Positions 10,241-57,117 of a DNA stretch of 64,000 bases are shown in pieces. Origin of the DNA: Anthoceros angustus (lineage: Eukaryota > Plantae > Anthocerotophyta); assembly GCA_010909165.1 (NCBI GenBank), contig VJWM01000016.1:248001-312000 (forward strand), in the 5' to 3' direction. The position numbers were made by a program, and so were the translations under genes. Below the pieces are notes generated by a model. That model saw only the letters and a program-made list of their open reading frames with translations, ran no database searches and had not been told where the DNA came from. Positions within the stretch are counted from its first letter, which is position 1. The number at the start of each line of letters is the position of its first letter.

Positions 10241-10899
10241 AGGTTATCCCTACTTTACAGTTCTCCATTAGTGAGATTGCTTACTACAAACGGGATGGGT
10301 ATGTATGGGGGTACGAATGAGTAGGCAGGTATAGAAATACGGTCACTAGCAGACTGGGGGTGTTCAGGGAGTACAGCATGTGTGGCGCGTGTAGTACTCA
10401 TCACCTTAAACTACTGAAAATCGGGCGGTTTAGGGTTTACCAAGCCCGATTATCGGGTTTACCAAGCCTTGACGATGCTTATCTACCAGCGATGCATATT
10501 GGTATTGCAGAGAGATACTGGAATAATCACCTCGGTAAATACGGTAATGAAAGCATACACGTAAAATACAACTACAGCCCGGTACACGTGTTACAATAAT
10601 GGCACGGGCAAAATACGGGAGTATAAGCAACAAGGGTTAAGGTAGATGCGGAGAAGGTTCGGTACCAAGCCTGCAAAACAGTAACAAGAGATAATGTAAG
10701 ACTCTGGTTGTTGCAATTATGTTAAAATTTTGAGAGGGGACACATACCACCTCTCACTACATAGCAACATAATTGCAACAAAATTGTAACATGACTATAA
10801 CAAGATGGAGGGTTGCTTTCCAAACCCTAAACATAACAAGGGACCCCATCACAAAGATGGAAGCAAGCGGCTTCCATATGATTCTAATATGGAAACCAC

Positions 10900-11600
10900 A
10901 GTCATATGGCTTTTTCATGGATTTCATATGATGTGTTGATACAGTAATAATACGTTTTCCCTAACATAGTTCTATGGAATTTTTTCATATGTAGTCCATA
11001 TACACGGTATATTGTCTTGGTGGGGAAGTATTTATATTCGAATATATAACAATCATACATTTGTAATATAAAAATCCACATGAAGTAGAAATGAAGAAAC
11101 ATGTGGTTTTGTTATCGTTTCTTCATGAATTTTCCTTATATGATAGCTATAACCAACAAAAGTATAACACACGTACCCTTGAGGTATTGTTCCTTATATG
11201 CAATTCTTACAGTAGGACATCCATTTTTGCACAAATGCTATATGTTATTTTCATGAATTCCATATTTTTTCTGAATATGTTCTTTATATATTTGACCACA
11301 TGAAGTTGACTTATGTAGAGACCATATGTATGTTATATTATCTTTGTATAAAGTTTTCTTATATGATCGGCATATCCACCAAAACTATAACGTGCATATC
11401 CTTGACTTGATGTTTGTATATAATTAGTAACATTCTTGTATATAGTTAATAACATGAACATTCATTGTTTCCCTTATGCTACATGTTATTTTTTATGGAT
11501 TCCATGTACTTCTCTTTTATGATAACCTTATCTTCTTTATATATAGACCATATGAGTTGACTCATGTACATACCTTAGGCATGATCTATGTTTGTATATG
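10900..11600. repeat. Diverged AT-rich ~220-bp tandem repeats, possibly subterminal repeats of the adjacent element
   Basis: ccacatgaagt..ttccttatatgat..aaaa(g/c)tataac recurs at ~11077 and ~11297, with a partial copy at ~11548. Confidence 0.5.
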
Positions 11601-14994: not shown

Positions 14995-15366
14995 CATCCG
15001 CAGTCGGATAAATGCACAGTGTGAGCGGACAAGCGGACAAGCCGGCTTGATGATAGATGCTAGCTATGTGATCGTTAGCTAAGGCAGGAGGCTAAGCGTG
15101 GGAAGGCAGCGACAGGCGAACTAGGGCGCATTAGGGCTGGTTGAGGCAAATAGGCCAACCCGCGGTTAAATGGAAGTCGATTAGGCTAACCTAGATGACA
15201 CTAACCTAGCTAACTAGCCAGCAGACTGAACAGTCAAGGAGAAAAGGACACGTGCAGACGGGAGGCGGAGGCTACTTGACCCGCTCCCAAGAATCAAGAC
15301 GGCCCCTCGCATTCCATCCATGGCCGCGCCCGTGTCTTGGTCTCCGTCTCAGGAATGCCGATTACA
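14995..15366 (+). repeat. 5' LTR (~372 bp; 5' TG end degenerate)
   Basis: tcggataaatgc...ggaatgccgattaca matches 22255-22628. Confidence 0.85.
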
Positions 15367-22215: not shown

Positions 22216-22345
22216 AGCGAGGCCCTCCGATGCTCGCTAGAGGAAGGAAGAGGATGTCACGATCGGATAAATGCGGTGTGAGCGGACAAGGTGACAAGCC
22301 CGGCTTGATGATAGATGCTAGCTATGTGATCGATGGCTAGGCTGA
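20720..22345 (+). repeat. ~805-bp tandem duplication of the integrase C-terminus, chromodomain, PPT and LTR start
   Basis: ggagctaagtgaagagatgcatgaagcc at ~20721 and ~21527; PPT+tgtcacgatcggataaatg at 21434 and 22255. Confidence 0.9.
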
Positions 22346-22628
22346 GCTAGCGTGGGAAGGCAGCAGCGGACTAGGCGCGCATTAGGAAGCTGGTTGAGGC
22401 AAATAGGCCAACCACGGTTAAATGGAAGTCGATTAGGCTAACCTAGATGACACTAACCTAGCTAGCTAGTAACTGCACTCAACCCCTCAAGGAGAAAAGG
22501 ACACGTGCACGGACAGGAGCGGAGGCTACTTCAGCCCGCTCCCAAGAATCAAGACGGCCCCCTCTCGCATTCCATCCTGCAGCGCCCTTCGTGTCTTGGT
22601 CTCCTGTCTCCGAGGAATGCCGATTACA
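22255..22628 (+). repeat. 3' LTR (TGT...ACA), preceded by PPT agaggaaggaagagga
   Basis: Canonical ends; PPT at 22239-22254. Confidence 0.9.
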
Positions 22629-25518: not shown

Positions 25519-28260
25519 GAACCTATGGTACCTATGTTGCTCGGCGTGCTGGCGTTCATCATAAGCGTGCTCGCACCATCACTCCCTTCCCAACCGCAAC
25601 CACCCTTACATTTTTGCCTTCACGGCACTTGGTTATTCCACGCCGCACCATCCACCAGTACGCCATAACATGGTTCTCCGTCGCGGTTGATATCCTCGAA
25701 CAACGCTCCATTCTTGTCTTCCATTCCATTTCTCCATACGAAATCGACCAATTCATAATACCTATAGGCCACCTCTCCACAAGGTCGGTGGCACTTGATG
25801 CGTGCACTGGGAAAACCAAATCCTAAGGTCGTCACGCAGCTCCTTTCGGTACCTCTTCCATTCCGGCCAGCCAGTCGAACACTTGGTGCATGAAAATGTG
25901 GCACTCCACCGGTCGGTAGACTCTCGCGATAATTTGTCCACCGCCACTCCATCCGGTCCGTCCCTCGCCGGTGCAGTCGTGAGGCGGCAAGTTTCTGGAT
26001 AGCCCTCCATGCGCAGACCGGCTTTGATGGTCCTCCACAAATGCCAAGAACTGACAGCTCCCAATAGTTGATGGGAACCATAGGCCACGCAGAATGTACT
26101 CGCGCTTTGCATCTCCCACTCCTCCGCCGCCCCCACGCCCCGCCGTGCTTGCCGGCGGACCGCAAACATGCGCGGCACCGTGATTTCAGTCATCTACGGC
26201 ATGTGAGCTACCTACTCTGTCGCTTCCCTCTTCAATTGCAACCGCCACCAGTTCACAACCCACCGGCCGCCTCCGCTCATGGCACGATCTTGGGTTCCTC
26301 ATCATCCTCCACGGGCACGGGCGGGCGCGTTGCCGACCCTTTGCACCACCGCCACCGGCGCGCTTCCTTGCCTAACTAATGCCCCGCGTTTCCCTTCCAC
26401 CAGCGGCGTCTCCTACCCTATTCCTTCTCGGCCGCGGTTGGGGCGGCGGCGGTAACCACGCGGTGGGCGGTCGTCACAACCCCCGGCAATCCTATTTCAA
26501 AACCTCCCACTGTGCGGTCCTCGTTGGCCCACCGCATCGAACTAGTGGGATGCGCGACTGCATCACTTGGGATGCATCCCTCCAGGCGTTCCCTACCCCC
26601 CCTCCCCAACGTCGCGGTGCACGGTCTTCCGCTCCTTTCCGACTCCATAAAGTCGGTGGAGAAAGCATGTTCACATAACCACTGGATGATGGGATGAACT
26701 CCTTTCTTTCACGAAGGGAATTGTGGGCTACAAACCCGTGTTTGTCAACCATTTGACCAACGGGTATGCCCGATCATTTCATGAAAACATGCATGAATAT
26801 TTGGTAATGAATGAGCTTGCGTTTTCGTAGGTCCCCACCACTTCGGCTGATTTCATTTCCATGCACCAAACCCACTTTGGCTGTCACCGGAACCTATGGT
26901 ACCCATCGGCAATTCTGGGCGTTCATCATAAGCACATGCTCGCACCATCACTCCCTTCGCAACCACCCTTACATTTTTTGCCTTCACGGCGCGGTTCACT
27001 TCCACCGCCCGGCACTCGCATCCCTCGCCATAACATGGTTCTCCGTCTGCGGTTGATATCCTCGAACAACGCTCCATTCTTGTCGTTCCATTCCATTTCT
27101 CCATACGAAATCGACCAATTCATAATACCTCATTAGGCCACCTCTCCACAAGGTCGGTGGCACTTGATGCGTGCACAGGAAAACCAAATCCTAAGGTCGT
27201 CAGTTCGCAGCTCCCCTTTACCTCTTCCATTCCGGGCGGCCAACCGCCGAACACTTGGTGCATGAAAATGTGGCACTCCACCGTCGGTAGACCTCTCGCG
27301 ATAATTTGTCCACCGCCACTCCATCCGGTCCGTCCCTCGCAGTGCGTCGTGAAGGCAAGTTTCTGGATAGCCCTCATGCGCGAGACACGGCTTTGATGGT
27401 CCTCCACAAATGCCAAGAACTCGGACAGCTCCCAATAGTTGATGGGAACCATAGGCCACGCAGAATGTACTCGCGCTTTGCATCTCCCACTCCTCCGCCG
27501 CCCCCACGCCCCGCCGTGCTTGCCGGCGGACCGCAAACATGCGCGGCACCGTGATTTCAGTCATCTACGGCATGTGAGCTACCTACTCTGTCGCTTCCCT
27601 CTTCAATTGCAACCGCCACCAGTTCACAACCCACCGGCCGCCTCCGCTCATGGCACGATCTTGGGTTCCTCATCATCCTCCACGGGCACGGGCGGGCGCG
27701 TTGCCGACCCTTTGCACCACCGCCACCGGCGCGCTTCCTTGCCTAACTAATGCCCCGCGTTTCCCTTCCACCAGCGGCGTCTCCTACCCTATTCCTTCTC
27801 GGCCGCGGTTGGGGCGGCGGCGGTAACCACGCGGTGGGCGGTCGTCACAACCCCCGGCAATCCTATTTCAAAACCTCCCACTGTGCGGTCCTCGTTGGCC
27901 CACCGCATCGAACTAGTGGGATGCGCGACTGCATCACTTGGGATGCATCCCTCCAGGCGTTCCCTACCCCCCCTCCCCAACGTCGCGGTGCACGGTCTTC
28001 CGCTCCTTTCCGACTCCATAAAGTCGGTGGAGAAAGCATGTTCACATAACCACTGGATGATGGGATGAACTCCTTTCTTTCACGAAGGGAATTGTGGGCT
28101 ACAAACCCGTGTTTGTCAACCATTTGACCAACGGGTATGCCCGATCATTTCATGAAAACATGCATGAATATTTGGTAATGAATGAGCTTGCGTTTTCGTA
28201 GGTCCCCACCACTTCGGCTGATTTCATTTCCATGCACCAAACCCACTTTGGCTGTCACCG
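25519..28260. repeat. 2 x 1371-bp tandem duplication
   Basis: ORF pairs offset by exactly 1371 (26068/27439, 26379/27750, 26492/27863); junction motif gaaccta at 25519, 26890 and 28261. Confidence 0.95.
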
Positions 28261-28399
28261 GAACCTACCATTTCATTTGCGGTATCCATCTGCATCGTCC
28301 ATGCTGTGTTTTTCTCACTGCGACTTATGGGTAGGTCAATCACTAACCAAGTAAACCTCACCAAGTCGATGTGAACACCATGCACACCGATGGTCTTTA

Positions 28400-31300
28400 T
28401 GCATGATGGACGGTTGACACGGTACTATGGAACATGACTATGACACATATATGGGTCTCGCATCTACAAAATACCTAAAAATAACCCAAGGAAAAGGCGA
28501 GCATGGTGTTGGTGGACATATACATTATTTATTGAGGCCAAGGAAGTAGGATTATACATAGACCCGGTGGGTTTTTCCTATATATGTGTGCCCAACCATG
28601 GATTCACTACAGTGCTTGCCTATCCCTCCCCTGCCTGCTTATATGTAGGGAGAAAAGTCCTTGGCCTTTGGACCAATCTAACATGTTCATTGCCCATGGA
28701 TGGCATGCACATGGTATGCATGTCATGATGCATGCTTGACATGCGATGTGTGTGAACATGTCTACCTACATGCTCTGTCATGGCACAATCAATCTATGTA
28801 CATCGTGATGCATGTTCGGCACGGTACTATGACACATATATAGGTCGAATATATATTGAAAATACGAAAATCAAAACCCAAGGAAAAGGTATGTTGTTGG
28901 TTATAATTATCATTTGTTCAAGGCCAAGGAGAAGTATGATTATAAATAGATTTGCCTACCATGGGTAGGTGGCACGTGATTTAACTGTTTTTTGGGCTTG
29001 ACACGGGACCCTTTGTATATATGTGGCCTACCTAGCCATTGATTCTTGGATTGTAGATGTTTGCCTGGATGGAAAGGGGTCCATACTTCGTCACTGCAGC
29101 GTCTCTTCTTTGTGTCTTGGAAAAGGGCGAGCATGTTGTGCAGTGCATAAATATCATTTGTTCGAAGGCCAAGGAAAAGTAGGATCGTAAATAGATCCGA
29201 CGTGCCTACCATCGGGTGAGAGGTGGCACGTGTTTCAACCCGTTTCCTTGGTGTTCAACAGACGGGACCACTATACATGTCTATATATGTGGCCTGCCTA
29301 GCCATTGATTCTTGCATTATACATGTTTCTCTGGATGAAGAGGCATACATACTCCGGCCCAGCAACTTCCCTTCTTTCTCCCTTGTGACATATGGGATCC
29401 GGTGGGAGCATCATGCAACCAACAGTTTGACCTTTTCCTTTGCTCTGCGCAAGGGACCATTGTTCATGTCATATATACGATTATGCACCCTCATGCTTTA
29501 TTCCATTGTCAATACATAGGAGAAAAGTGCATGTGTTAGATTGCGTCATTCCGCACATTCAACTTTGCTCATAGTGGGCAGCGTGTGGGCACCTGTGGGC
29601 GTCTCGTCTGCATAGTGTGGGCAGCGTGGGGCAGGTGGGGCGTCTCATACCGCATCAACGCCATGCCTCCATTGCATCACTCCATCAATGCCTTGTCTCC
29701 CATAATGCATGGCTATGCATTTTGCATTTGATGAATTTAAGGCATTTAGGCAATTTCGAAATTTAGGCGTTTGGGCATTTTGCACTATTCGCATTTATAT
29801 TTATGTATTTCCATTTTGGGCAATGTCGGTGGCATTTTTTCGCCTTCTGTTTGTTGGGTGGGTGCGGTTGGTTGGGGCGGGTTGGGGCGGGTTGGGTTAT
29901 TGTGCGGGTTGGGGTTCATTGTGCGGGTTGGGGCGGTGTGTCTTTGTTGGGGCGGGTGGCGGGTGGCGCATCGGGCGGGCTCAGCCGGCGGTGCAGCCCT
30001 CTGCTGGGCGATGGCGCGTGGGGGCTCCTCGGCTGTCCGTGGAGCGGGCCGGGTAATGGTGGGAGGACCCCTGGCGGGATGGGGTCGAGGATGTGGGAGT
30101 GACACAAATCCAGCCATGAGGCCGCGGAAGGGCCAAGCGGCAACCATGCCATCGAAAAATGAAAAGTGACAGATGGCTGCGTTGGCAGGCCAAGATGGGC
30201 CATGTTCACGGATTTTATGGCAAGCAATATGGGATGGACTTCATGAGCGGTACCGATTGCGGCGCGCGGACTACGGAGGATATTAATGCATAGCGAGATG
30301 GTGCGTGAATATGGCGGATGCCTAAAAGGCATGTTGGTGAAGGATGTCCTGGATGGTTGTGCAATGGCCATGCGGGCACTGCCGTTTCCGTCTCCAAAAC
30401 AAGACCTCCCACCACGGTGGTCGACCGCTCATGCCTCCAACGCGACCATGACATCGGATGGGCATTTGAATATGCAAGGCACAATGAATTGTTCCACAAC
30501 GTCGGATATTGGTGTGCGGTCCGGACACAATGCTCGGAGGCGGCGCGATAGCGCATCATTTGCACTCGACAATAGTTTATTTGAACATATCGGACCCAAT
30601 ATGTTATTGGGACACATATGTCTGACATCTTCGCGTGTGGCGGAAGGAACCATGATCGCCGGACCACATGGCATGTTTGGCGGGAGCCGAAAGTCAAGCC
30701 GGGTCATGTCCGCTGCAGAACCGCGGGAGGCGGAAGCGATCGGCGCATGGGGTGTTGGTGGCGCATGCATGCATCGGCAAGATGATGGCGCGGCGAGTTG
30801 AAACATTAGCGCAATACGCAATCATATATCGTGAGCCAAAACTTGGCCCGCGCGGCCACCTCCCAGCGAATCACCGCCCATGCCGGCGTGCCCGGTATGT
30901 CGGGCGGGGACGGAGGAATATCGTCAATGATTTCAGCTTTCCTTGGGCGACCCACTCACTTGAACAGCGCAATGCTTGCGGGCATCGCGCCATCGATCTC
31001 CTTCGCGCTGCCCTGCCGCCCCACACCGAGGCGCACATACGGTGGCGGATGTAAGGCAGTAAGCGGATCTTTCACAGTGCACCATGGCGTCGGAAGACAC
31101 GTGAGCATTGCACCTCTCAACCCGCCGGGCGTGACGAGGAAGAAATTGTGGGCACAGTTCTTGCTCGGCACGCGCCGTACGCGGATGGCGCGAATATGCC
31201 CCCATGGGTCATCGATCCGTCCGCCCACGGATGCGAGGCGGCCTTGTCGCGGGCCCGCCATCGCCCGTGTTCGCCAGCGGGCGGCGTCGTGCGCCCGGTG

Positions 31301-34300: not shown

Positions 34301-36800
34301 GCGGAGGTTCCAATCGGCGGCTGCCCGACAATCACAATGGGCAAATGGAAAGAGGTGCAGCGGTGGGGTTTTGAGGCGGAAGGTCTTCCAAATGGGCGTG
34401 CACCGATGGCGCATGGCGAGGTGGTGCGGCTACCGAGCAAGGTTGTTGTCATTGCGACAATCCGAGGTGGACGCTCAAAGTTCTTCTTGTACATCGGATC
34501 GAGAGGCTGACGACCGGAAGAAGACAAGCAGAAGTGTGCGGCGTGGAAGTGCGGTCGGCGTTCCGAGGTGCTCCTCGATGAGAGACAGGTATGGGCCTTG
34601 CATTCAGTGCCGGTGAGGTCTTGGGCATGGCCGAGGAGTTTGGGCTGCGTGTGGAAGACGGGATGCAGCGCGATCGCGGGATGCGGAGGGAAGGCGCTTT
34701 GGTGCATCATCGGTATGGTGAGCCCACTCGCCGCCACATATCCGTTGTGCCTTGCCGGTGGGAGGAAGGTCCTTGAATGTGCAGTGGAGGGGGCGGTGCG
34801 ATCGGGGGAGGCGGGCGCGGAATGGCCTCAAAGGGAGGTGCATTTTGATTGCGCCGCAATCACCGAGGCAGTGAACTTGCAGGGTGGCGATGGCGGCAGT
34901 GCTCATAATAGCAATGGCCGCGATCGCGAGTGGAAGAGTGGTTGTGGAATGGCGGTAGAAGGGTACTCCTCCATAAGTTTGGTGTTTCGCAAACCAAGGG
35001 CGATCGCGATGGTGTAATCGGTCCAAAGCCTAATTTGTCAGTGGTGTCGTCCAAAGCACAACGACTTGGTGTTTCGTTTTCATGTCTTTATCATGTAACT
35101 AGTCCTCGGCCTATGGCCCAATAGGCCGTGTTTCGTCATTGACATGACTTGATATTGTTGTCAAAGGCCAAGGACTAAAATGTAATCTGGATTGACGAAT
35201 GGTCCGAATGTAAGGTCCGATTCATGTAAGAAAATCCATTTCCCAACTACACGGTACTTGCCTATCTCGCCCGCCTATATATACGAAGACAAGGCCTTCC
35301 CCTTTGGACCATCCCGAGTCATGAAAGGGAAAATACTCATTGGCCTTTGGAGCTTTCACATTGGCAATGAAGGAACAAAACTCCTTGGCCTTTGCACCAA
35401 TATGTCAATCAATGAATGGAAGAAGACCTTGGCCTTTGGACCAAACCGAGAATCACCAAATGAAACAAGTACCTATCGACCATTCGACCGCTTAGTGACC
35501 ATTCTGCATAGGTTACATTCAAAGCCACACGACGCTCCCACTAGACAATGCGGTTCCCAAAGGTGAGAAGAGGGAAAAGAGAAAAGAAGGGGAGTATGGC
35601 TGCCTATCCTTTATGACAAACATGTACAATCGAAGAATCATAGGTTGGGTAGCCCACATATATAGGCAAAAACCACGGGACTCTCGATGAAGCACCACCC
35701 GATGGTAGGCACTGGATCTATTTAGAGTCCTACTTCTCCTTGGCCTTTGAACAAATGATATTTATGCATAACAACCTACTAGCCCTTTTCCTTGGTTTAT
35801 GATTTTGTATTTTCTATATAGGTGCGGTGACCTATATATGTGTAGTATCTTGTGCCTTACAAACATCGCGATGCACATAGGTTGATTGTGCCATGACACC
35901 ATCTAGGTAGACATGTTACATGTCAACCACATCATGACGTGGTCCGAGGCAAAGGCAAGGACGTTTCTTCCTATATATAGGCGGTAGGCGGGGATAGGCA
36001 AGTAGCGTGTAGTTGGGAGTCCATGGTTGGGTAGCCCACATATATAGGCAAAAAAAACCGGGAACTGTTGATGGAGTGCCACCTCACAGTCGATGGTAGG
36101 CAGTTAGGTATATTTGTAATCCCACTTGTCCTTGGCCTTCGAACAATTGATATTCATGCAATGAAGAACGTACTCGCCCTTTTCCTTGGGTTATGGTGTT
36201 TAGGTATTTTGAATATAGATGCGCTGACCTATATATGTGTCATAGTACCCTGCCGAACATGCATCACGATGCACATAGATGGAAAAGGTGCCCATGACAC
36301 AGCATCTAGGTATACATGTTCACATACTTCACATGTCAACCATCCATCCATGCATGCATACCATGTGCTTTCCATGTGCACATTTTCCTTGGGTTTTGAT
36401 TTTTAGGTCTTTTCTATATAGATTCGTTGGCGTATGTATGTGTCGAGTCTGTCGAACATATATCACGATGCACATGCACATGGTATGTATGCATGATGGC
36501 TGGTTGACATGTGATGCATGTGACCATGTCTCGTAGATCGTGTCATGGGCACCTTTTCCTTGGGTTTTGATTTTTATGTATTCTCTATATCGCACGTGAC
36601 CTTTATATGTGTCATGGTACCCTTCCTACATGCATGGTGCACATACATGGATTGTGCCATGGCACATCTAGGTACAAATGTTCAATGCATCACATGTCAA
36701 CCCCATCATGCATACATACCATGTGGATGCCATCCATAGGCAATGCACATGTGACATTGGTCCAAATGCGAAGGACTTTTCTTCCTATTTATATGCAAGG
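28400..36800. mobile_element. Segment bounded by ~1-kb diverged, internally repetitive inverted repeats (28400-29350 vs 35600-36800), with decayed GC-rich + strand coding-like sequence inside
   Basis: aacccaaggaaaagg / aaggccaagg / catcgtgatgcatgttcggca on the left match ccttttccttgggtt / ccttggcctt / tgccgaacatgcatcacgatg on the right. Confidence 0.55.
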
Positions 36801-37167
36801 CGGGGAAAGGCAAGTAAGTGTAGATGCCATGGATAGATGGCGAGAACACACATCGGAAAAGGGTGGTAGGTTGACTAGCGGTCAACATCCGGACTCAAGC
36901 AAAAGTCAGTTAGAAGGTTGGAGCTGCGGCAAGCTGAAAGCCGGTGGCAACATGCTGACCATCTGCGCAGTGGTGTTGAAAATAATAGCGGCGGCGAGGC
37001 AGCCAAAGCGAGCCTGGTGGCAAGTGATGCATTAGTGCCAAATGCGGTGAAAATCTGGACAACAGGCGGCTTTCTTGATTTAGCGCAAGTTGGGCAGCTC
37101 TTCACTCGGAACTCCAAGTGCCACTTTTCAAAGTGGAAGCTCACGAGCATAGGCGTTTTGCGATATG

Positions 37168-38085: not shown

Positions 38086-41000
38086 GCGGGGCGCGGCTGC
38101 TGCCAACCGGCTGTTACTGCACATGCGGCCGCCAGTGCGATGGAGGAGATAATTTGGCGGCCGACTTTGTAGGGAAGTGGGCAGGCTGCGGCCCAATAGG
38201 CTGCGATGGAGGTGCTTTGGCGCCCCGCCAATCTGCGTCACGAGGATGGCTGGCCATGCGATCGCCTGCGATGCGCCTTAACGGACATTCGCCCACCTGG
38301 GCAAGGCGGCCAAGGCGCAACCCATGTGGTTGCGCCAAGGCGCAACAGGCGCATGCGGGGGACCCGGCATCCCTTGCTCCTTCTCGGGTGCCGTGGGCGG
38401 AGGAGGAGGTGGGGCAGGCGGTGAGGATGGTGGGGCAAGCGGCTCCGGGAAGGAGCCGTGCAGGCGCCCGGTGAGAGTGGAGAGAACGAAACCGAGGAGG
38501 GAGGAGGCGCCCCGCAGGACGATGGGCGTGGGGGTTGCGAGCGAAGGGGCGAGGCGCGCGGAGGACAACAATCGGAAGACTCCGATGGTAAGTGAACCGC
38601 ACAATCCGCCGTGGCTGTTTGACAATGCTTTGGTTCGATTGTCATTGTCATGCCTCGTAATCTTTGGTTGCAAGTGGTGAACTTTGCCATGCCATGGTAC
38701 TCATATGTCAGTTGGGTTTGCGGTGTGGGCCGGAGTGGGCAGACCAGCCCTCTGAGGTCATCTACGGCAGGAACTTCGTTCGCATCCGCTATCTGACGTG
38801 CGTCGTCGAGATCGAGCGGAGGCTGGCGGCGAAGGCTGGAGCGGAGGGAGGCAAGGCGAGAGAGCTGGCCGAGCTCATCGTTGAGCTCGAGGCAGCCCGT
38901 GGGCACCGGAAGAGGAAGAGGTGCGGCCCAGGGGCGGCGGCTAGCGATCAGGCGCGGGCGCGATGCAAGGCGAGTGCGGGCGAACCCGGTGCCGAGGCGT
39001 GAATGGGGCCAGCACGGTGGGGAGGGGCCACCGCCCAAGGCCGCAACAAGGTGGGGCATCCACGGCTCAATGGAGCTCCGAGTATGGTAACAGCGAAGTC
39101 CAATGCGATTGCAATCGACGCCGCCATGGCGCCATCGGCCTCCTTCTTGAAGTGGTGGAGAAGGTGCGCAACCGAGGTCCGCACCGACATGGAGGGAGTG
39201 ATGGACAGACTCCGGCGGCCGGGCCGACAACGCGGCCGATGGGAAATGCCCGCTGCGGCTGCGTTCATGGAATACATGAAAGATGGCCGCATCCTCCATG
39301 CCATCGGGCCAATGTGCAAGCGGTTCTTGGTGGTGGGCGCCACCTCTCATCGCCCCGCCACGCCTTCCGGTTTCGGTCCCCCCTTCCCATTGGTGCCGGG
39401 ATGAACCTCCCCAACCTCACGAGGGCAGTGGTGCACAGCCTGGCCTGTGGGTGCACCTCCCATGTCCGGTGCGGAGGACATTCGGCCCCTCCACGGCCAG
39501 GCGGACAGGCGGGACTGCGGAGGAGGAGCCAAGTTCGGAGCACAAGAGGATGGAGGCTGCTCGAGGCTCTTCCGCGCGGCCGTAGGCGTAGGGAGGTGTT
39601 TTTTTTGTGGCGCTCCCACCATGAGGTGTGGCGCTTGAGACTCGGATGTTTTTGGTTGAGCAGCGGCCTCGATTGTGCGCGGTGTCGTAGGACGGAAGTG
39701 GATTTGTAGGGGCCTTGATGACATTTGTTTGATGAGTTGAGGGAGAGTGTGAAGCATGTTCGGATCTGTAATGCCGCATTGCATGGTTTCCTTCCGATCG
39801 TGTTCGGTTTGAAAGGTGAAGTCTTAGGTGGGAGGAAGCTTTGCACGATTAGCATCACATGACCTTCGATGGCCACCTTGTACGCAGGAGATGCACGATG
39901 GGGAAAAACATCGATCGAACATGTTCGCGGCTAACATCCGGCCACGGGGCGACGGTGAAAGGGAAAGCGCTTGAGCAAGTACCATGCCCAGTGGGGCTTC
40001 CACGGGGCCGAGACATGTCCGATCCGATATATATGTCCATGTGGTGGGAAAACCCTAAACATGAGTGTATACAAACATAAACCCTAAATGGCGAAAAGAA
40101 AAGTGGATGACAAGATCCAACACCAGGCCAAGTTCGAGACAAAAACTTTTGTAGCCGCCTACGGCCCGTCACTGATGTGGCGCTGTGATGTCGTGAAGGC
40201 ATCTTGAAGATGCGCTATAGCATCTTCCCTGTAGAATCTGGGAAGAAAAAAACATTCACACACACACACGGCTTAGTGGCGAGTGATCGAGTAGTTCCAT
40301 ACTTACGTCTACAACCAGCTGAAACCCATAAGGTTAATGTAGCTCTTGGTGTCGGGCGATGATGGGGAGACACGACGGATACATGGTCTGGTGAAGTAAG
40401 AGGCTCATTGGTTGCGGTTGGGCGAAATAAAGCGGCTGGCGTTATGGTTTTATGCAGTGATAGAAATTGCAGTCTTTCGTTGAGATATCTAAAAGGCAAT
40501 GTTAGATTGACCAGGCCAAAGAGATGAGTGTTCTTGCACTTTACACGTTTGTATTTGAAACTTTCAAGGCTATGAAGAATCGAGCTCGTGGAGGCAGAAG
40601 TAACACTCGCGTCCGGGGTTTGCCTCAAAATCGCATGTGCATGAAGTGGAGCTATGGGATCGTCTCCAATATCGAGATGCAAAAGAAATACACGGACAAT
40701 AGTGGCCGATGACATACATTACATTTCACGTATCTCGGAAACGTCCTCTTGCGCCAACTCCTACTCGGGTGGTGTCAGTCAAGAGACTTTCAATTGATGC
40801 TAACTGTGCACACTTTGCGTACGTATTTGCCGCCGATCTTATTGTTTCCTAAAGTACACTTCATCCGGACTGTACAAGGCCACAAGGCGGAGCATCAATT
40901 TGACGGCGGTGAGGATCCCGGGTATGCAAACGTCGGTGAATCGTGAGTGGATCCTCTACGCATCATCTGTTGTTTCCTTTTGCTTGGTGGATGGGGTCTT

Positions 41001-41924: not shown

Positions 41925-44900
41925 ATGAAGTTTGATTGTCTTCATTGTGGGATAAAAAATTTTGGACACTTAGGAGCTCTATCCCGCCATCAACAGAGTT
42001 TTAGATGTCAGAGTGCTCAGCGAAGGAATGCGGATAGGGAGGAAAGGGAACGGACTAATGTTGACAGGGAGGAAAGAGCAGATCGGGGGAATGGGAAAGG
42101 ACTAATGTTGACAGGGAGGAAAGGGAAAGAGCACACCGGGAGGAATGGGAAAGGACTAATGTGGACAGGGAGGAAAGGGAAAGAACTGACCATAAGGAAA
42201 GGGAAAACACTAACTATGAGGAAAGGGAAAGAGCTGACCATGAGGAAAAGGAAAGGGCTAATGTTGATACAGAGGAAGGGGAAAGACCTGACAGGATCAT
42301 CTTGGAGGGACAGATCATGTCGTCGGAGGAGAGCAACTTGGCAGCCTCTAGTACCACAATCAGCTCTGAAGAAAGTGGGAGTGAAGATGACGTGGAGAGC
42401 AGTACTGATGACCGTGTCTTGGCTGAGCTTACTTCCAAGGCCTTTGATTCAACCTTGCATTTAGTCAAAGTTATCATGGACTGCAGAAATGGTGTGGGAA
42501 TGTCTCAAAGGAATGTTTCTGCATTGTTTTGTTGCTTGTTTCATCCTGAATTTAATTTGAGTGATGTGAAGGTTCATATTGTGGATGAGTTGAGAGCATT
42601 TCAGGAGCAGATGGTTAGAGATTCAGAAGCTAGCTATGAAGATTCGGGGTGGCATGAGATTAATTTGAGGCCAAATGCAACTGACCCTGTAATTTTGAGA
42701 TATCGCAATGTTGTTTGTGTGCTTGCAAAATTATTCTCTGACAAACGCAACAAGCGAAAGTTTGCATTAAGAGCTGAACGTGGTGTAGAAAAGTATACCA
42801 CTGCTCAGACAGGGAAATGGTGGTCCACCATGGAGGTATTATACTTTCTACTTGATGGACCTACTAGTATCGATTGAGCCATTCATCCTTTTCATTCCAA
42901 TCTTGATGTTAATTATTTGCTACTTGTAGGATCACGTAAAATGTGAAGGAGCTGTTATATCACCTCTCATTTTATATTCAGATGTGACAAGCTTGTCAAA
43001 TGATCAAAAAGTGACAGGATATCCCTTGGTTATGACCATTGCAAATATAGCTTGCTCCAATCGATCATTGGAGCATGGACATGTCCTGTTAGCAATTTTA
43101 CCAGTCCTTGGAAGTTCTGGCCGTTCTAGAAATAAGAAAGTGGAGATGCTGGAGATTTTTCAAGATTGCTTGAAGACCATTCTTCAACCACTTAAAGATG
43201 CTAGCTTCAAGTGAGGTCCTCTTTCATCCGATAGCTATCATGATGAATCAATTATAGTTAGTTCATGATTCAGAAGTTGTTAGTAGCTTGGCTTCATGAA
43301 ATTAATGTTAAATCGAGTGACTACTTGCTTGCATACTAGTGGTATAGCTCTACTTGATCCTCATGGAAACAGCCAATGGGTCTTTCCTATGCTATACGCC
43401 TATGTTCAAGACCATCAAGAGGGCTGCAAGGTAAATTTTTAGATTTTCAGTTTGTATTGATGGCCTTGTAACCTAAGTTTTCAGTTCTGATTCCAACTTG
43501 CAATAATTAGATTTGTGCTTGAAGGGAATTGATGCTATCATGTCTAGTACTTCAACCACCGTTGAATAAATCTTTTGGAGCATTTACTAATTCATAGCAA
43601 CTTGGTTGTAGTGACGTGCACGTATGACACAAATCGATGTTCATATCCTTGTAGCTGCTGCCTAGTCCCTCGGGATCTTTTGAGTTCTGTAGGTATAAGG
43701 CATATGTACAGGACTGAAGAAGGAGCAAGGAACATCTACAATATTATGGTCGAGGAGGCTAGGAGGGGCAATATAGCATTCGCTAGGCGTTTGTCTAAGG
43801 ACAATTCTGTCCACCCTGTAGAGGTTTGCTTGTTGTCTACTAATCACACGATACCAGTACTTTTAAGGTTTTCTTTTTTGTTCCTACTGGAGTGTTGCTA
43901 ACTAGCCCAACCCTGAAACTTGTGCAGTGTGCACTCCTGGGATTCAACGGAGGTGAAACTGAGCTAGGAAGTGCATTTCGTGCGATTCACACAGAAATTC
44001 TTCACCAATCTGACCTTGGATTGGCCAAGATGCTTATAGGAATATTGATTGAAGCTGCCACTAGTGTATGTCGGGTGAGGAAACCACTGCAAGTTATGGA
44101 TGAACGGTTGAGGCATCTCAAAATGTTTCACCGGTACTCCGAGTACAGAGTTCCAGGAAATGACCAGCATGGATATTTTACTTCAAACTCGAATTTTGCG
44201 GCGCATGAACATCGAGCTGTGCTACAAGTAATAGTACCGTGTATGGTTGGTGTTTTTCCAAACTCTTTTATTAGCACATTTGTTCACTTTCTGGAGTGGT
44301 ATAGAGTGGCATGTCGCAGCCCATTTCATACAGAAGAAACACTTCAGGAGATGGACAGATTAATGGTCAGGTGATTATCCTCTTGGCTCTAATTCTTGAT
44401 TTTGTTACCGAGGCTAGTCTAGCAAGTTGTGATTGTCCTTTGATGTTTAGAGTTCTGACTGTGAGTATTTTCATATTTTTAGAGCTGTGCAATCAATGAA
44501 AAGCAACCTAGGGGACTGGCAAGTGTCCAGTTTTGATACTGTAAAAGTACATGCTATGGTACACCTTTCTGATTGTATTCGGCGTTCCGGTTTGCCTTGG
44601 GAATTCAGCGCAGAAATGTATGAACATATGCACATTGCGCTATTGAAGACTCCGTATCGTGGTAGCAACCGGCGTAAGTATCTTGACCAGATTGTAAAGC
44701 ATCACCAATGCCTGGAGGCTCTGCGAAGTCAAACAGACAATATGGAAGGCTTTGCTCCCCGAAAGGAGAGAACAACTCCCTTAGACATTGTAAGTGACTT
44801 AGTGTGAGTGCTATGTATTATCGCTCCTAATAGGATCAAGCGATCATGATATGTTTTTTCTCGTGGTTGTAGGCTGTTAGGACTGGAACAAGCAGGTTAT

Positions 44901-45618
44901 CTGGCAAATGTATACGACTAAAATTCTCATGGTTGCAACCAATTGGACCTGAAATACTTCCGACGAAAGCTACTAAGTTTCTTGCAGTTCAGCCAGAGTT
45001 ACAAATGCATTTGCAATCAGAGTTGCAATCATTTTTATCACAGAATGAGCTCATTCTACATCATGGGCAGGCTAGTCCTTGTTATGTGCTCTTTGGTTTA
45101 CATGATACCCTCTAAGTTGTTGTACCTTGAGTGATTTATATCTTGACCATTTTCATCATTGTGTTTGTTTTTAGAGTATCGTGGTGAAGTCAAGCCTTGC
45201 TATGACTGCTGGTCCTGGAGAGAGGCTTGGGGATTGGCCAATGTACCTACGAGCTAGCCAAAACTTTCATGGAAGGTCTTGGTTCTCGGATGTTAGCATT
45301 CAGATGGAATCACAAGGGCAAGAAGAAAAGACTTGGTATGGACAGCTACGCTTGTTGTTTATGGTCAAACTTACAACTCCAGATGGCACACCTACGACGA
45401 AGGAATTGGCTTTTGTGAAGCTTTATCGAAAAGTACAGTCTCTAACTCGCATCAGCAGGATCATCAATTGTCAAGAGTTGAAATGGGCTAATGCTACCAC
45501 CAGACGGTCAGGATATATGGTGGTTGACATAAGTAGTATACTTAGAGCACATCACTTGGTTCCAAATTGGAGCACCGGCAGTTCTGGACACTTTTTTGTG
45601 AACAAGTATAAATTTTAA
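41925..45618 (+). CDS. Plavaka-family transposase (~960 aa, 8 exons: 41925-42835, 42930-43210, 43340-43430, ~43611-43823, 43928-44370, 44483-44789, 44873-45070, 45175-45618)
   Basis: N-terminal Zn finger CLHC..LSRHQQSFRC; YRNVV; TGKWW; PLILYSDVTSL; YPLVMTIANI; AYVQDHQEGC; PCSCCLVP; EILHQSDLG; KVHAMVH; SAEMYEHMHI..KTPYRGSN; YGQLRLLF; ILRAHHLVP; FFVNKY. GT-AG introns (one probable GC-AG) join in frame except for 1-nt lesions at ~42087 and ~43611. Confidence 0.88.
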
Positions 45619-45849
45619 CTCTTCAATTCGATCATAGTAAACTTGTCTCATCACTTCTCAGAACATGCATGATAACATGTTCATTTCCACTTGACTTGAT
45701 GCTTTTGTGTCAATCTGTCAATCTAGCCCTCTTGCCTCAAACACTACATGGATTTCTCAGAATTCCTCTGAGAATGTTTTCCAATTACACATTCTAATTT
45801 TCAAGCAGAACCATATTTGTGGTAAACGCTCAGCTCCTGGCTAAGATTG

Positions 45850-47880
45850 GCATGCAAGTACACAAACGCGCGGGGAGGTAGGCAGGGCCCTTCACTTGCA
45901 GATTCGGGAAAGAGGGTTGGAACGGGATTTGGTTGTTGGCAACTGCCTGGTGGATAGGTCTGCAAAGTGTGGCAGTTTGGAGGATGCTCGTACAGTGATG
46001 GAATGTGCAGGAGAGATGTGGTGACCTGGACCCCCATAATTGTTGGATATGCTACCTCTTTGCGTGCTCAAGAAGCTCTAGCGTTGTACATGGAAATGCA
46101 GAATGAGGGCATCACTCCATCGAATCATGTTACGTATGTCTGCCTGTTGAAGGCATGTGGCATCGTTGGAGCATTGTGTCAAGGGAAGCAGCTGCATGGC
46201 CAGATTCAGGTCCAAGGACAGGAGCTGACGCGACCATTGGCAGCAGCCTTGTGGACATGTATGCGAAATGCGGGAGCTTGGAGGACGTGCGTGGAGTGTT
46301 TGACAGATTGACAGTCAATGATGCTGTCACATGGAATGCTATGATAGCGGGATTTGCTCAGCATCGGCCTGGTTAAGAATCGCTGAAGCTCTTTTCAAGT
46401 ATGCAGAAGGAAGGTATTGTTCTACCAGATCACTCAACTTTTGTGTGCCTCTTGAAAGCGTGTGCCAATATTGGGGTTTGACGTGAAGGTAGAAAGATTC
46501 ATTCCAAGATTCTGGAGCGAGAATTGCATGGTGATGTGGTCCAAGGCAATGGCCTGGTGGACCTGTATTCTAAATGTGGCAGCTTAGAGGATGCCTGCAG
46601 AGTGTTCGATGATCTGCCCGCAAGAGATGTGGTAATGTGGAATGCCGTGTTCATTGGATATTCTCAGCATGGGCTTGGGCAAGAAGTCCTGACTCTATAT
46701 ACAAGGATGCAGCAGGAAGGCATCACTCCAGCCGATCAAATAAAATTTGCCTGCGTGCTGAAAGCATGTGACAGAGTTTGAGCTTTACATTTAGGGAAGC
46801 AGCTGCATTCCCAGATTCGAGATGAAGGATTAGATGTTTTTGACAGCATGAACACACAGGATGTGGTGACATGGAATGCTTTGATTGATGGGTATGTAAG
46901 ATGTGGTGAACTGGAAGATGCACGCCAGGTATTCTACAGCATGGCGACTAAGAATGTGGTGACTTGGACGGCATTGATTGCTGGGTATGCCCAGCAAGGT
47001 CTTGGACATGAGGCGCTTGGTCTGTATGGGCAAATGGAGAAGGAGGGCCTGATTTTGGCTGACCATTGTACGTTTTCTTGCCTTCTGAAGGCCTGTGCAA
47101 GCACTGGTGCCTTACAGAAGGGCAAGCAGGTGCACTCACAGATTGTTGAGAGAGGACTGCTAGATGACGTAGTGTTGGGTGACTGCCTTGTGGACATGTA
47201 TACAAAATGTGGCGAACTAGAAGATGCACGCCAGGTTTTTGACAGCTTCAACACCAAGGATGTGGTCACATGGAATGCCCTGATAACTGGGTATGGTACT
47301 TGTGACGATGGTCAGAATGCACTAGCTTGTTTTGAGGAGATGTTAGTTGATGGCATTCAGCCTGATGGTGCTACTTTTATTTGTCTTCTAGCAGCATGCA
47401 GTCATGAGGGACTGGTCCAGGAGTAAGCACTTCGATTCCATGGCTGAACAGCATGGCATCGAACCTACTATTGAGCATTACAATTGCATGATTGATCTTC
47501 TTGGGCGTGCGGGCCATTTAAATGAGGCTGAGAAGATGCTGTTGTCATGTGAGGGCCAAAGTAATGTTGTGGCCTTAAGGTCTTTGTTGAATGCCTGCAA
47601 AAGTCACGGGGATATAGAGAGGGCGATGTGGTGTTTTGAAAGCATTGTTAGGCTGGACCCTCAGCGGGCAGCATATGTGCTCATGGCTAACGCCTATGCA
47701 GATGCAGGTATGTGGACCGTTGTAGACAGGATTGAAACACAAAGAACGGTAGCAGGAGCTAGCAAGAAACCTGCTGTGGCGACTATTGAGGTGAATAAGC
47801 AGGTACATAGATTTCTGGTGGGAGAAAGGAATGAGCATATTGCACAACAGGATCCATCTACCCTTTTGAGGAATTCCTGA
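45850..47880 (+). pseudogene. PLS-class PPR protein of the DYW:KP (KPAxA) type; lacks the N-terminus and catalytic DYW part; stops and frameshifts
   Basis: Repeated LVDMYxKCGxLEDARxVFD / DVVTWNALIxGY / TFxCLLKAC; HYNCMIDLLGRAG; E motifs; KKPAVATIEVNKQVHRF at 47764-47814; intronless. Confidence 0.9.
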
Positions 47881-48190
47881 TGATGGATGGCCGGAAATGA
47901 CAGTAAGCCCATCATCATCCGTGGCATGCCTCAGAGCTTCCGTTCGAAGATGGTATGGCCCTTTCGTCGGTGGAGTCACAGAGACTGACAGACGCAGAGC
48001 AGCAGGTTTCAAGTCTCCTCCGCCTGGTCTAGGTGACAAAAGCGGAAAATTCTTGTCAAGTGATAAGGTTGGAGAAGCCAGCAGCTCCTTCCACGAGATA
48101 GACAGTGTGCCAATTTGCTTGGAGGCCGTGAGCTTGCTGAGCATGCCGTACTTCTTGAGAAGCCCGAAAACCAGCTCACATGGTGTCTCT
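47846..48190 (-). pseudogene. Fragment of a glycine-rich domain-containing protein (GRDP1/2 family)
   Basis: ELVFGLLKK..SKQIGTLSISWKELLASPTLSL..LRLSVSVTPPTKGPYHLR...TDDDG..IS...PQKGRW parallels the GRDP pattern as I recall it, SWxxLLxxPxL..SxTPPxxxPYxL...TDDxG..PQxGRW. Confidence 0.7.
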
Positions 48191-49711
48191 TCGCCATTCT
48201 AATGGTTCCCTACTCTTTGTCATTTCTGTGCTTTTCATGTGCCGTTTTAGATTTTGGACCTGGTTCATGGTCATGGACAGCACAACTCCCGAGAGTGGAC
48301 ACAAAACCCCTGCAAGATTTCCAAATTCTAGCTACCTGGCTGGAATCGACACAGTTCGACGACTTTTGGGTCTGGTTTCGTCATCCCAGGTGATATTTTC
48401 CCTCAACCCTCGCCGATCCTTTCTTTCTGGACACATGGTCGGCTGAATGTGGCCTGAATTCCAATACATGCAGTGACCCTCTCCTTTTGAATTCGAGCAG
48501 TACGGTGGTGGCATTTCGTGGCAGCTATACATGTATGATGAGAGTCCTGACGGTTCATCAACATCGACTGATGATCGGAAAGCTGCCCCGGCTCTGGCTA
48601 CGGATATGTCACAAGACATATCCGACTGTACAACATGTTTCTGGATAGTGCTTTGACAAGTCATGCCACTGTCGTTTGCAGACATTCTCCCATATTGGGA
48701 ACCTCGGCCACCAAGCCGCTGGAGGCAAGTGGTTGGCGACATTCCAAAACACGGCGTGCTTCTTTCGGATGAGGCTGCTGTACCAGGTTTTGGTTTTCGT
48801 TTCGTTTCTGTTCATCTGCGGCAATGCTTGCAGTCGTTTCAGCTCTGGAGAGAAGTGCATGCTATCTCAGTGCTGATTTCTGCATTAGAGGAGGATATCT
48901 TTGTCTGTGGGTGATTACCAGTTGGCCAATGTGGTGCAGAAGAGAAATCTGGCGCTGGCATATTTGTAGCAGGAAATCGAGGTGCAGGCGCTGTTGAGAT
49001 ATCCAAAGGATAGTTCAGCCGGTTGTACAAAGAGGTGAGAGTTCTTGCACTTCACATGTTTGTGTGCTGAAACTTTCAAGGCTGAAGAATTTGAGCTCGT
49101 GGGCAGGTAACATCGCATCTGGGGTCTGCCTCAAAGCTGTATGTGCATGATGGAGCAATTAACTGCGAAGCTGGAAGAGGAGCAGACCAAGGCCTGAGCT
49201 CAGGAGCAACCCGTCACCCTCGATCCGTCAAGTTCACAGCTAGGTGAGTTCTCCTCGCTAACTAGTAGTTAGTGAAAAGATAACTAGAACACCTAGTTAT
49301 CTCTTCGCTAAATGGTCAGACGAGAGGTTGTTGCCGAATAAATGAGCTTAACTGGTCACTATGGTGCAGTCTCCCGGACGAATTGTTGGCGACCAGGCGG
49401 GGCTCTGCGCTGTTCTAAGTTGGTGCTCGTCAGGCGTTGTTCTTCGGTGGCCGTTTCTGCCAGGCTCTGCATTCTCTTATTCTTGCGTAAGTGAATTCTT
49501 GCCTTGTCTGTTTTCCTCAACTTGCTCCCTGTCCACTTTCATTTTCTCGCCTTGTCCGTTTTCCTCAACTTGCTCCCTGTCCACTTTCATTTTGTCGCCT
49601 TGTCCGTTTCCTTCAACTCTCTCCTTCCACTTTCGTATTCAAACTTGCTTTGTCCGTTTCCTTCAACTTGCTCCCCCTTCTACTTTTGTGCCAGTCGTTA
49701 GAGATAATCAA

Positions 49712-51069
49712 GATGACCAGTAGACGCATTAGAGCTTCAGCTCCAAGTCAGAAAGAGGACAATAGAGCTTCAGCTCCAAGTCAGAAAGAGGACAACAGAG
49801 CTTCAGCTCCAAGCCAGAAAGAGGACACACGAGTTTCAGCTCCAAGCCAGAAGGACAATGAGAGGCCTAATTGGACGTCTGATAAGGCAGCCTGTTACGA
49901 GATGAGGTCGAAGTCTCATATGGAAGCGATTGCGGCGCAGCAGCAGAAGCCAGTTGAGGATCGAGCTGCCTTTATGGCCAGAAGGAACTGTACCTTTATG
50001 GCCAGAAGGAACTGTATTGGCACGGAGGAGCGGTTAGTTTAAGACCTCTTGAGTTTTTTGTCTCTCCGTGTCTTACAGCAAGTTTCCAGTTTTGTCGACT
50101 AAATTTCTATCTGTTTGGTCTGATGCTAGGGGATTTGAAGGCCGAGGAATTGTGAAGAGGTCAAGAGAGGCTGGAGAGACTCTTCTTCACACCAACACAA
50201 AGGCAAAAGTTCACAATGAAAACGCATCATAAATGTTAGTGCTCGAGTTCATATGTTTCTATAGCCCCTTGCACCTGTTTCCAATTTAAGTTTTTGGTTT
50301 GTTTGGCAGGCTCACTGTTGAACTCCTGAAGGAAGAGAATAAAAAGCAGCGGGACTTATTAAATTTGATGCAGCGGACGACAGATATGGCTTTGAAACTG
50401 TCAAATGTCAACAAACCGGATTACATGGACTCAAAATCTTTGAACAGGAAAGTCGGCATACTGCTTGCAGATGTCATGCTTGGCAGGACCTCGGAGGCTA
50501 CTTTTTTCCCTAGTGATGATTGGCTGCAGAAGAGTATCATGGCTGCGTATTTCATTCAAGAAGATCAGAACGCACGCTGTGAGTTCCAAAAAAATTGGAT
50601 ATCTACAGTACACCGTCATGTTGGAGTCATTGTGCGGAATAAGAGATGCAGTTACACAAAGATCTTAAGAGAGACACTTTACGCTAAGATTGGTTCGCCG
50701 AAACCTAGATTAAATGCTCCGAGGGGTGATTTGATTGATTGGGAAAGTAAATTGGAAGATGTAAACAAGTCATTAGACTGGAGAGAAGTTTTGGACACCG
50801 ACACAGGTATGCTGGATGATTGGGGCGCTGATCCTTTAGTGGCTTGCATTGCGGCTGTGTTTTATGGAACAGGTAGAGTTGAAATTGTTTGTCCAATCGA
50901 GCTGAACATCCAGCAAGCGGCTTTCTTATTCCATGTCGCAGAGCTTGCCATGGAGGGGAAAACGTTAAGAATGCCGCAACACCACCAGCAAATCGTGAAT
51001 ATGGAGCATAGAATTCGAGCATCCATGGGTTCAATGACAAAGTTTCATATAGTAGATTTTGATAATTAG
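49712..51069 (+). pseudogene. Second ORF of unknown function, putative Plavaka partner (3 exons: 49712-50032, 50130-50234, 50310-51069)
   Basis: N-terminal RASAPSQKEDN repeats (33 bp x4); GT-AG introns; ~250-aa open last exon; two stops in the middle exon consistent with C>T changes. Confidence 0.55.
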
Positions 51070-52181: not shown

Positions 52182-52769
52182 CGTATACAAAACACATGGA
52201 ACATATGTGTTTGAAGACATTGAATTTATATGGATTTGTGAATTTTTATATGGGAACTATCATGTTTTACTACTTATATGTGTATATATCATATTATAAA
52301 AACATTCGACATATCTGTTCGTACTATATACAAGTTATAATCATTAAGCATAGTGCTTGCATTAGTTGCATGTCTATCCATGTACGCAAATCATGCATGT
52401 TCGCCATAATTTTTGATGGGGTATAATCATAAGATTAAAATTGATGTCATAAGATAATTTCTTAACATATCCATACAAACTTCCACATCATATGTGTTGA
52501 GAACATTGTATGGAGATTGTGCTACACATGTACATTTTTTTATATCAAATTCATGAATAAATTGCATGACACTCTCTATGGAGTGGGAACCATATGATTG
52601 TCATATGGTTTCCATTAACTCTCATTTTTGTGATGCCAAAAGTGTAATAAGACCCCAAGATTTCAACATAATTGTAATAAGAGGGGTCCAAATCTTAACA
52701 TAAAGTGTAATATGATTGCCTTTTTCTAGTAGGGTGAGAGAACTCTTGGGTTTTGTTGGTATAGTGGAT

Positions 52770-56093: not shown

Positions 56094-57117
56094 CATATAC
56101 ATACATAGGTAACCTACAATTATCTTCTACACGTATGTATGGCATAAGGCTAAAAAATTAGGCTTCAACCCATGAATAATATGATCACAAAAATATTGAC
56201 AAGAAAAGAAGGTTATGAGGTGGGAGATGTGGTAGGGAAAACCCGCACTCCGAGATTCTCCCACTATAGCGGCCACACTTATCCCAATCGGCCGCTCAGA
56301 CGCTTGGGTTTCATCCCCATGAGACTTGTGAAAGTTCGAGGCCTTGTGATCACCGATCGCGCTACTTGCAGAGACACAACTTCTCGCCTTCTAAACGAGC
56401 AAGGCCCTCTACTAACCCTCTTACAAAGATGCGCCCACTTGCACTGCAAAACTACCGCCTCGACCCACAACGACACAACACACTGCAGGTCCCCGCCTTG
56501 CGGGGAGCCTATCACGGGCGCCCAGGGACCCCCTGACCCACACCGCGATTTCGTCCGCACTTCTAAGACCACTCTTCTCCACTCAGGGAGCGCTCTTTTA
56601 CTTGCAGATTTGGGATTCGTCCCTTAGGCTCTGCCTGTGGCCTTCCGCTAACGCCTACACCCTATTCCTCTACTCATCTCCTCATCCTCTTCCTCCTATA
56701 ACACGCTATTCAGTGAAGGGGGTGAATATCCGAACCCCCTTCTGGTTGAACGAAACCTCCTTCACTAATAACACATGGTTCCCAAAACCGTGTTTTTTGG
56801 ATTTGTGTCCCATACCATGGACAATGATTCCTACAAATGCAGCTTTGTGAAACAACAAAACCAAGGAAGGGTCAGGCGCTGGCTTAGTCCTCAAAAGTAG
56901 TTTGTTTTGTGCGATGATCCATTTCCACATTGACAAAAGGCCTAGTAATAACACAACAAAACTAGGTATGGGTAAATGCATCTGCAAGCGTTGGAGACCA
57001 TCCACTGTTTTAGGTTCCGCCAAAATTGACCACTAGCAGACAATAGTTCACAACTACAAAGCGTCTACACGTCTGGCTAACTTGTGACTCAACGGTGCTT
57101 GTTGACCGAATCATAAA

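Follow-up and report, generated by a model that had tools for sequence, protein, structure and literature searches.

Fragments of a DYW:KP-type PPR gene as probable stepwise-acquired cargo of a Plavaka transposon in a hornwort genome

A major question raised by this locus is how a PPR sequence of the kind found in U-to-C-type editing factors comes to lie between the two genes of a DNA transposon, and what its presence there says about the origin of such factors. The sequence-only reading that drew attention to it had proposed that, through capture by the transposon, editing factors could be multiplied and reshuffled. Here we analyse the window, that is, the whole stretch of 64,000 nucleotides of Anthoceros angustus DNA shown above, and ask in turn whether the PPR sequence is internal to the transposon, what type of gene it derives from, whether it could work, and how it was acquired. 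The features on which the argument rests are collected in Table 1.

Plavaka elements are cut-and-paste DNA transposons of the CACTA-Mirage-Chapaev clade, and Iyer et al. 2014 reportedly deals with them. Searching the transposase exons and the PPR pieces one by one, we found that the Plavaka domain (PF18759) scores 51.8 bits (cut-off 26.3) on the exon at 42930-43211, with weaker collinear matches on the exons before and after it. The second gene, ORF2, is probably expressed and spliced, since a contig of the public run X1 is identical to it over 49766-50031 and departs at 50031 at the donor-like site G/GTTAGT. The exact motif CATCACAAAA forms the right end at 52635, and the transposase gene, ORF2 and this right end follow one another in the order and orientation of a single element. 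Within the window the right end has a sole partner, at 10847: 12 of the 13 terminal bases are identical, CC stands on both sides (a flank match with a chance expectation of 1 in 16), and the first 100 nt, with the subterminal region, are about 65% identical, with a score of 19 where 2000 random 100-mers reached at most 15 (z 8.9). The alternative ends at 39853, 39734, 12996, 9283 and 56183 were rejected because they lack subterminal likeness to the 52635 end. The last of these belongs to a GATCACAAAAATA sequence at 56183-56195 which resembles a Plavaka left end, lies 3.5 kb past 52635 and is unlike the other ends in its subterminal part. The region from the transposase stop to ORF2 (45.6-49.5 kb) contains no terminus-like 13-mer. 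Because the TIR pair with its CC flanks encloses the genes and nothing like a terminus separates the transposase stop from ORF2, the PPR tract would be internal to one TIR-bounded Plavaka element, with the caveat that the candidate ends span 41.8 kb, of which 28 kb are unexplained. The earlier placement of the PPR sequence inside a Plavaka locus thus agrees with the Plavaka domain on three collinear exons upstream, ORF2 downstream and the candidate TIR pair with CC at either end.

Table 1. Coordinates of the transposon genes, candidate ends and cargo tiles (positions in the window)
Feature	Position	Strand	Description
Candidate left TIR and subterminal region	10847..10946	+	CATCACAAAGATG..., CC before
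Diverged second copy of the patch right edge (81.6%)	40480..40665	+	about 1.3 kb upstream of the transposase ATG
Plavaka transposase gene, several exons	41925..45618	+	Pfam Plavaka domain on 42662-42835, 42942-43202 and 43299-43433; TAA at 45616
PPR tile 1	45845..46834	+	(L)-S-P-L-S-P-L-S-P-L; two frameshifts (~46000, ~46222); in-frame stops (frame 3) at 46374 (TAA), 46479 (TGA), 46779 (TGA)
PPR tile 2	46835..47763	+	truncated S, then S-P-L-S-P2-L2-S2-E1-E2; one frameshift, 47424-47431
DYW:KP remnant	47764..47877	+	38 residues, KKPAVATIEV box, xHP insert absent, then TGA TGA
C2_GRDP fragment (glycine-rich domain protein)	47881..48198	-	PF25334, E 5.3e-05, below gathering score; tail to tail with PPR
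Tile of unnamed family	48177..48618		~98% to own-species contigs that diverge beyond 48177 and 48618
Intron-bearing tile	48624..49163	+	~95% to relatives; 72-nt GT..AG intron 49035-49106; right edge is the patch right edge
ORF2, second gene of the element	49361..51069	+	no Pfam family; probably spliced
Right TIR	52536..52635	-	reverse complement CATCACAAAAATG..., then CC

Upstream of the transposase gene, 28 kb reaching back towards the candidate left end (11.8-40 kb) consist mostly of GC-rich sequence. They contain a direct repeat (15004-15366 against 22263-22628, 85%), a tandem repeat (25519-28267, 95%) and an inverted repeat (28437-29385 against 35593-36814, 75-79%), and Pfam had no match on 20 long ORFs of the 12-40 kb region or on ORF2. 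Exact look-ups of four window ORFs returned no recorded match, nor did a word search with the last transposase exon, in a length range that left out full-length transposase proteins. Both transposon genes carry repeats near their starts: coding tandem repeats with 24-54-nt units rich in K, G, E and R at the transposase N-terminus (42040-42292), and three 33-nt coding units, RASAPSQKEDN, at the start of ORF2 (49731-49855).

The PPR tract itself occupies 45845-47880 on the forward strand and runs from PLS-class PPR motifs through E1 and E2 into the first 38 residues of a DYW domain. Pfam reports PPR, PPR_2 and PPR_1 on five stop-free pieces within 46012-47877 and the E_motif on 47392-47877, and the three-frame translation of 45600-48100, read motif by motif, gives the order (L)-S-P-L-S-P-L-S-P-L-[cut S]-S-P-L-S-P2-L2-S2-E1-E2. 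The tract therefore shows what defines the PLS class, a tandem array of P motifs (about 35 residues), L motifs (about 36) and S motifs (about 31) with E1 and E2 behind it. Similarity to PPR proteins sets in at 45845-45875, 227-257 bp past the transposase TAA (45616-45618), where a distance of about 230 bp had been noted before. The tract has no N-terminus, its first residues already lying inside an L motif, and it ends at a double TGA (47878-47883) within the DYW domain. When the window was searched by tblastn with a complete GRP-type protein, P0001, the HxE/CxxC part had no match anywhere and nothing aligned past P0001 residue 655. The missing start and the break before HxE/CxxC, both remarked on in the sequence-only reading along with the PLS motifs and the KP-type box at 47764-47793, are thus real features of this copy. 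Since truncation has removed the zinc and catalytic site (HAE...CxxCH), the sequence is a remnant of a DYW:KP member and not a working member.

In DYW:KP proteins, K-P-A-x-A occupies the position of the PG box of DYW:PG proteins (PMC11332814, PMC9478123), and the xHP residues after the box are missing in most of them (PMC9478123). The window has a KP-type box, KKPAVATIEVNKQVHRF, at 47764-47814, and in our alignment it shares with GRP and DRH proteins the same four-residue xHP gap relative to DYW-ending proteins. The same box recurs in three proteins (P0001, P0156 and P0086), all of which have HAE and non-DYW ends. Because Pfam is blind to the difference between KP and PG and a word search misses full-length PPR proteins from a short query, we searched a library of representative sequences. 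Among its 1.84 billion representatives, the best match of the 162-residue PPR end was P0001 (E 2.4e-49), which reads KKPAVAGIEV, GHAEKLA and CTDCH and has GRP at its C-terminus; two further good matches come from the hornwort Nothoceros aenigmaticus. A word search with the same 162 residues gave two distant matches, its length range leaving out full-length PPR proteins.

With P0001 as bait we gathered 114 more full-length proteins, so that window pieces were compared with 265 proteins in total, grouped by their C-terminal end or site. For a C-terminal piece of 149 residues (47431-47877), median scores were 164 bits against GRP-ending proteins (n=4, median identity 56%), 136 bits against DRH-ending proteins (n=6, 48%), 121 bits against other HAE proteins (n=22) and 104 bits against DYW-ending proteins (n=74, 39%). 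The top four matches of this piece are all four GRP-ending proteins (55-59% identity; DRH 46-48%), the four best complete relatives of the tract all carry HAE and end in GRP, and the best matches of PPR tile 2 are the GRP-type proteins P0164 (61%) and P0001 (57%). We considered whether KPA arose by simple G-to-A decay of a PG box and rejected this, since affinity to the GRP type is seen in the xHP gap and across the entire 149-residue piece as well. These comparisons support the view that the C-terminal part of the tract derives from a hornwort GRP-type DYW:KP gene, although the GRP triplet itself would lie beyond the truncation point. Both the DYW:KP assignment, for which the KP box and the absent xHP insert speak, and the probable GRP subtype, suggested by the higher scores against GRP-ending proteins, uphold the earlier typing of this sequence.

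Hornwort GRP-type DYW:KP proteins (Gerke et al. 2020; Gutmann et al. 2020; both cited through PMC9478123; compare the designer proteins KP2/KP3) and the window sequence have in common KPAxA in place of the PG box, the lack of xHP, and a P2-L2-S2-E1-E2 region closest to GRP-ending proteins. Unlike them, the tract keeps only 38 of about 133 residues of the domain, lacks the HAE...CxDCH zinc site, the GRP end and the N-terminus, and has its reading frame broken six times. A source gene of the GRP-type part was looked for, and none was found among the sequences searched. A contig segment, L003 1074-6742 (Logan SRR33208241), carries the complete GRP-type PPR gene of P0164 tail to tail with C2-domain ORFs, a layout like that of the PPR and GRDP pieces in the window; it was rejected as the source locus of this pair because its C2 ORFs have no sequence likeness to the GRDP piece.

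Could the tract still be translated into an editing factor? A tblastn alignment with a complete relative needs frames 2, 1, 3 and 1 in succession and hence three frameshifts, which fall near 46000, at 46215-46269 and at 47424-47431; the in-frame stops of tile 1 are three more lesions. The PPR tract is a six-fold broken pseudogene fragment, beyond mere truncation. RNA editing is impossible for a fragment without a start, a targeting peptide, the zinc site or the catalytic glutamate and with a broken frame, and we conclude that it has no function as an editing factor.

We compared the tract with contigs of four public runs (X1, X2, X3 and X10) from three organisms, in which contig depth is not copy number. 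At 46836 only the last eight residues of the expected S motif (VFDSMNTQ) are left, a loss of about 23 residues, and this internal junction, 46834/46836, is the point where related contigs from three organisms depart from the window. A 2856-nt X2 contig, from the window's own organism, is 95% identical to 46255-46834 and has a different sequence after it. Contigs of X3 and X10, from two other organisms, are 93-94% identical to 45961/46251-46834, continue with 765 other letters and then rejoin the window at 48624-48771, the 765 letters replacing the middle 1789 nt of the window patch (46835-48623). Tile 1 relatives from X2, X3 and X10 (93-95%) have TGTT after 45995, an A after 46222 and a C at 46374, which turns TAA into CAA; because the relatives do not have them, the lesions at 45995, 46222 and 46374 are private to the window copy. 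Since X1 and X2 hold both exact-match contigs and a version at about 95%, the window copy is a paralogue in its own genome.

The PPR tract does not stand alone. It belongs to a cargo patch of about 3.4 kb (~45716-49163), in which at least five tiles that have diverged unequally are joined as a mosaic. At its right end, the 72-nt intron is spliced out in X1 without a single difference (joint 49032/49105; 0 differences), and the same intron region is spliced out at high depth in X10, from another organism; on the basis of two spliced joints, X1 is probably an RNA run. The stretch 48177-48389 is 98.6% identical to a 1111-nt X1 contig (depth 64) that departs at 48177, and this contig is probably the expressed source gene of that tile. 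Separate tiles have close relatives with different breakpoints and different divergence (~95% against ~98%), and tiles of unequal divergence suggest more than one step of acquisition. Near the two transposon genes there is also a direct repeat of about 170 nt (40480-40665 against 48995-49163, 81.6%), its second copy spanning the 72-nt intron and lying 0.2-0.3 kb before ORF2. The repeat may represent a leader common to both transposon genes, or else two parts of a single host gene.

Gene-fragment cargo is well known in CACTA-related transposons, namely Tgm-Express of soybean (PMC1947982), Pack-CACTA (PMC6379663) and Pack-TYPE elements (PMC8903248). The element in the window resembles these in belonging to the CACTA-related clade and in holding, between its ends, unrelated host-gene fragments from several loci and on both strands (PPR on the forward strand, the GRDP C2 piece on the reverse strand, and two further tiles), some with introns, which are non-functional as genes and possibly co-transcribed. 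Pack-TYPE elements are non-autonomous by definition, whereas the cargo-bearing element here has kept a transposase gene and ORF2. It differs from the systems just named also in its superfamily, which is Plavaka and not CACTA proper, and in its host, a seed-free plant. With Plavaka (PF18759) it shares the transposase domain and, if the candidate ends are its true ends, would also share a short terminal inverted repeat and a 2-bp target duplication.

Taken together, these observations make stepwise capture reasonably probable: the PPR tract would be cargo without function, a single tile in a 3.4-kb mosaic of scraps from host genes that was assembled between the transposase gene and ORF2. The tiles would have been copied at the DNA level, for which the intron retained in one tile argues, in more than one step and through repair-associated template switching as proposed for Pack-type elements. 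An older composite of PPR tile 1 and the right edge (about 95% to relatives) would later have taken up a younger insert (about 98% to relatives) that contributed the PPR end of GRP type together with the GRDP piece and a further tile. The fragment would then have entered neutral decay, and it may ride passively in a transcript running into ORF2.

The patch might instead be an independent repeat, for example a non-autonomous Pack-type element of another family, for which the Plavaka element was merely the landing site. The four runs, from three organisms, contain relatives of the patch at 90-95%, and the adjoining Plavaka backbone (44600-45700 and 49256-50400) has none there at 90% or above, a pattern that suits this reading no less than it suits capture; the X2 relatives are about four times as deep as the exact-match contigs, though depth in a contig table is not copy number; and at 40480-40665 a second, truncated copy of the right edge stops at the same position, which is how copies of mobile-element termini behave. 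Yet the patch borders showed neither an inverted repeat nor a target duplication nor a Helitron-like end, and tiles that differ in their breakpoints and in divergence among relatives indicate that the patch is not one unit. We regard this explanation as rather unlikely. Stepwise capture must also be weighed against a decayed host locus, in which the PPR sequence and its neighbours stayed in place and were flanked by two separate Plavaka remnants, as would fit the contigs of other organisms that join PPR tile 1 to the 48624-48771 tile and contain no Plavaka sequence at 90% or above, some of them 2.2-8.7 kb long, as for low-copy DNA. Against it, transposase, ORF2 and right end are ordered as one element and enclosed by one TIR pair with matching CC, the presence of exact and about 5% diverged versions in the same organism makes the window copy a paralogue, and the middle 1789 nt differ from the form in other organisms, so that we think a host locus very unlikely.

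The same data bear on whether the fragment might be functional as RNA, serving through the transposon transcript as a source of small RNA or as a decoy for the large DYW:KP family. Exact-match X1 contigs cover 45946-46123 and 46566-46731 in a run whose spliced joints make it probably RNA, tile 2 resembles very many family members, and the summed depth over 46734-47897 is huge. But X1 is only presumed to be RNA, and the lesions are private to the window copy, as in neutral decay; such a role seems to us barely conceivable.

What does the locus say about the proposal that capture amplifies and shuffles editing factors? The piece is dead, has no catalytic centre and is itself a patchwork, and relatives of its tiles in other runs are unaccompanied by this Plavaka backbone, so the proposal finds no footing here. 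Given tile relatives without the backbone and their unequal divergence (~95% against ~98%), we see no evidence that the element amplified the fragment. PPR genes make up about 7.9% of the genes of Anthoceros angustus (PMC7027989), a share at which a PPR scrap among captured pieces is expected by chance. We conclude that the locus shows no sign of transposons building working editing factors. A bolder idea takes the in-frame junction 46834/46836 as a fusion in which the PLS array comes from one gene and the S-P-L-S-P2-L2-S2-E1-E2-KP end from a GRP-type gene, and supposes that such joins arise regularly in Plavaka cargo and that some are released intact. We hold it to be highly improbable; if it were true, the very large hornwort family of U-to-C editors would owe some of its new target specificities to repeat shuffling by transposons.

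Plavaka elements have been reported in Archaeplastida from algae and a moss and are considered lost in land plants apart from moss (PMC13519894). Set against that picture, the element described here is a further land-plant case and extends a transposon lineage whose presence outside fungi was recognised only recently. The mildly new aspect is the combination of transposon lineage and host, gene-fragment cargo itself being ordinary: in a seed-free land plant, scraps of U-to-C-type editing-factor genes are documented as cargo of a transposon of the Plavaka lineage. Annotators are thereby warned that some DYW:KP matches in hornwort-type genomes are transposon cargo.
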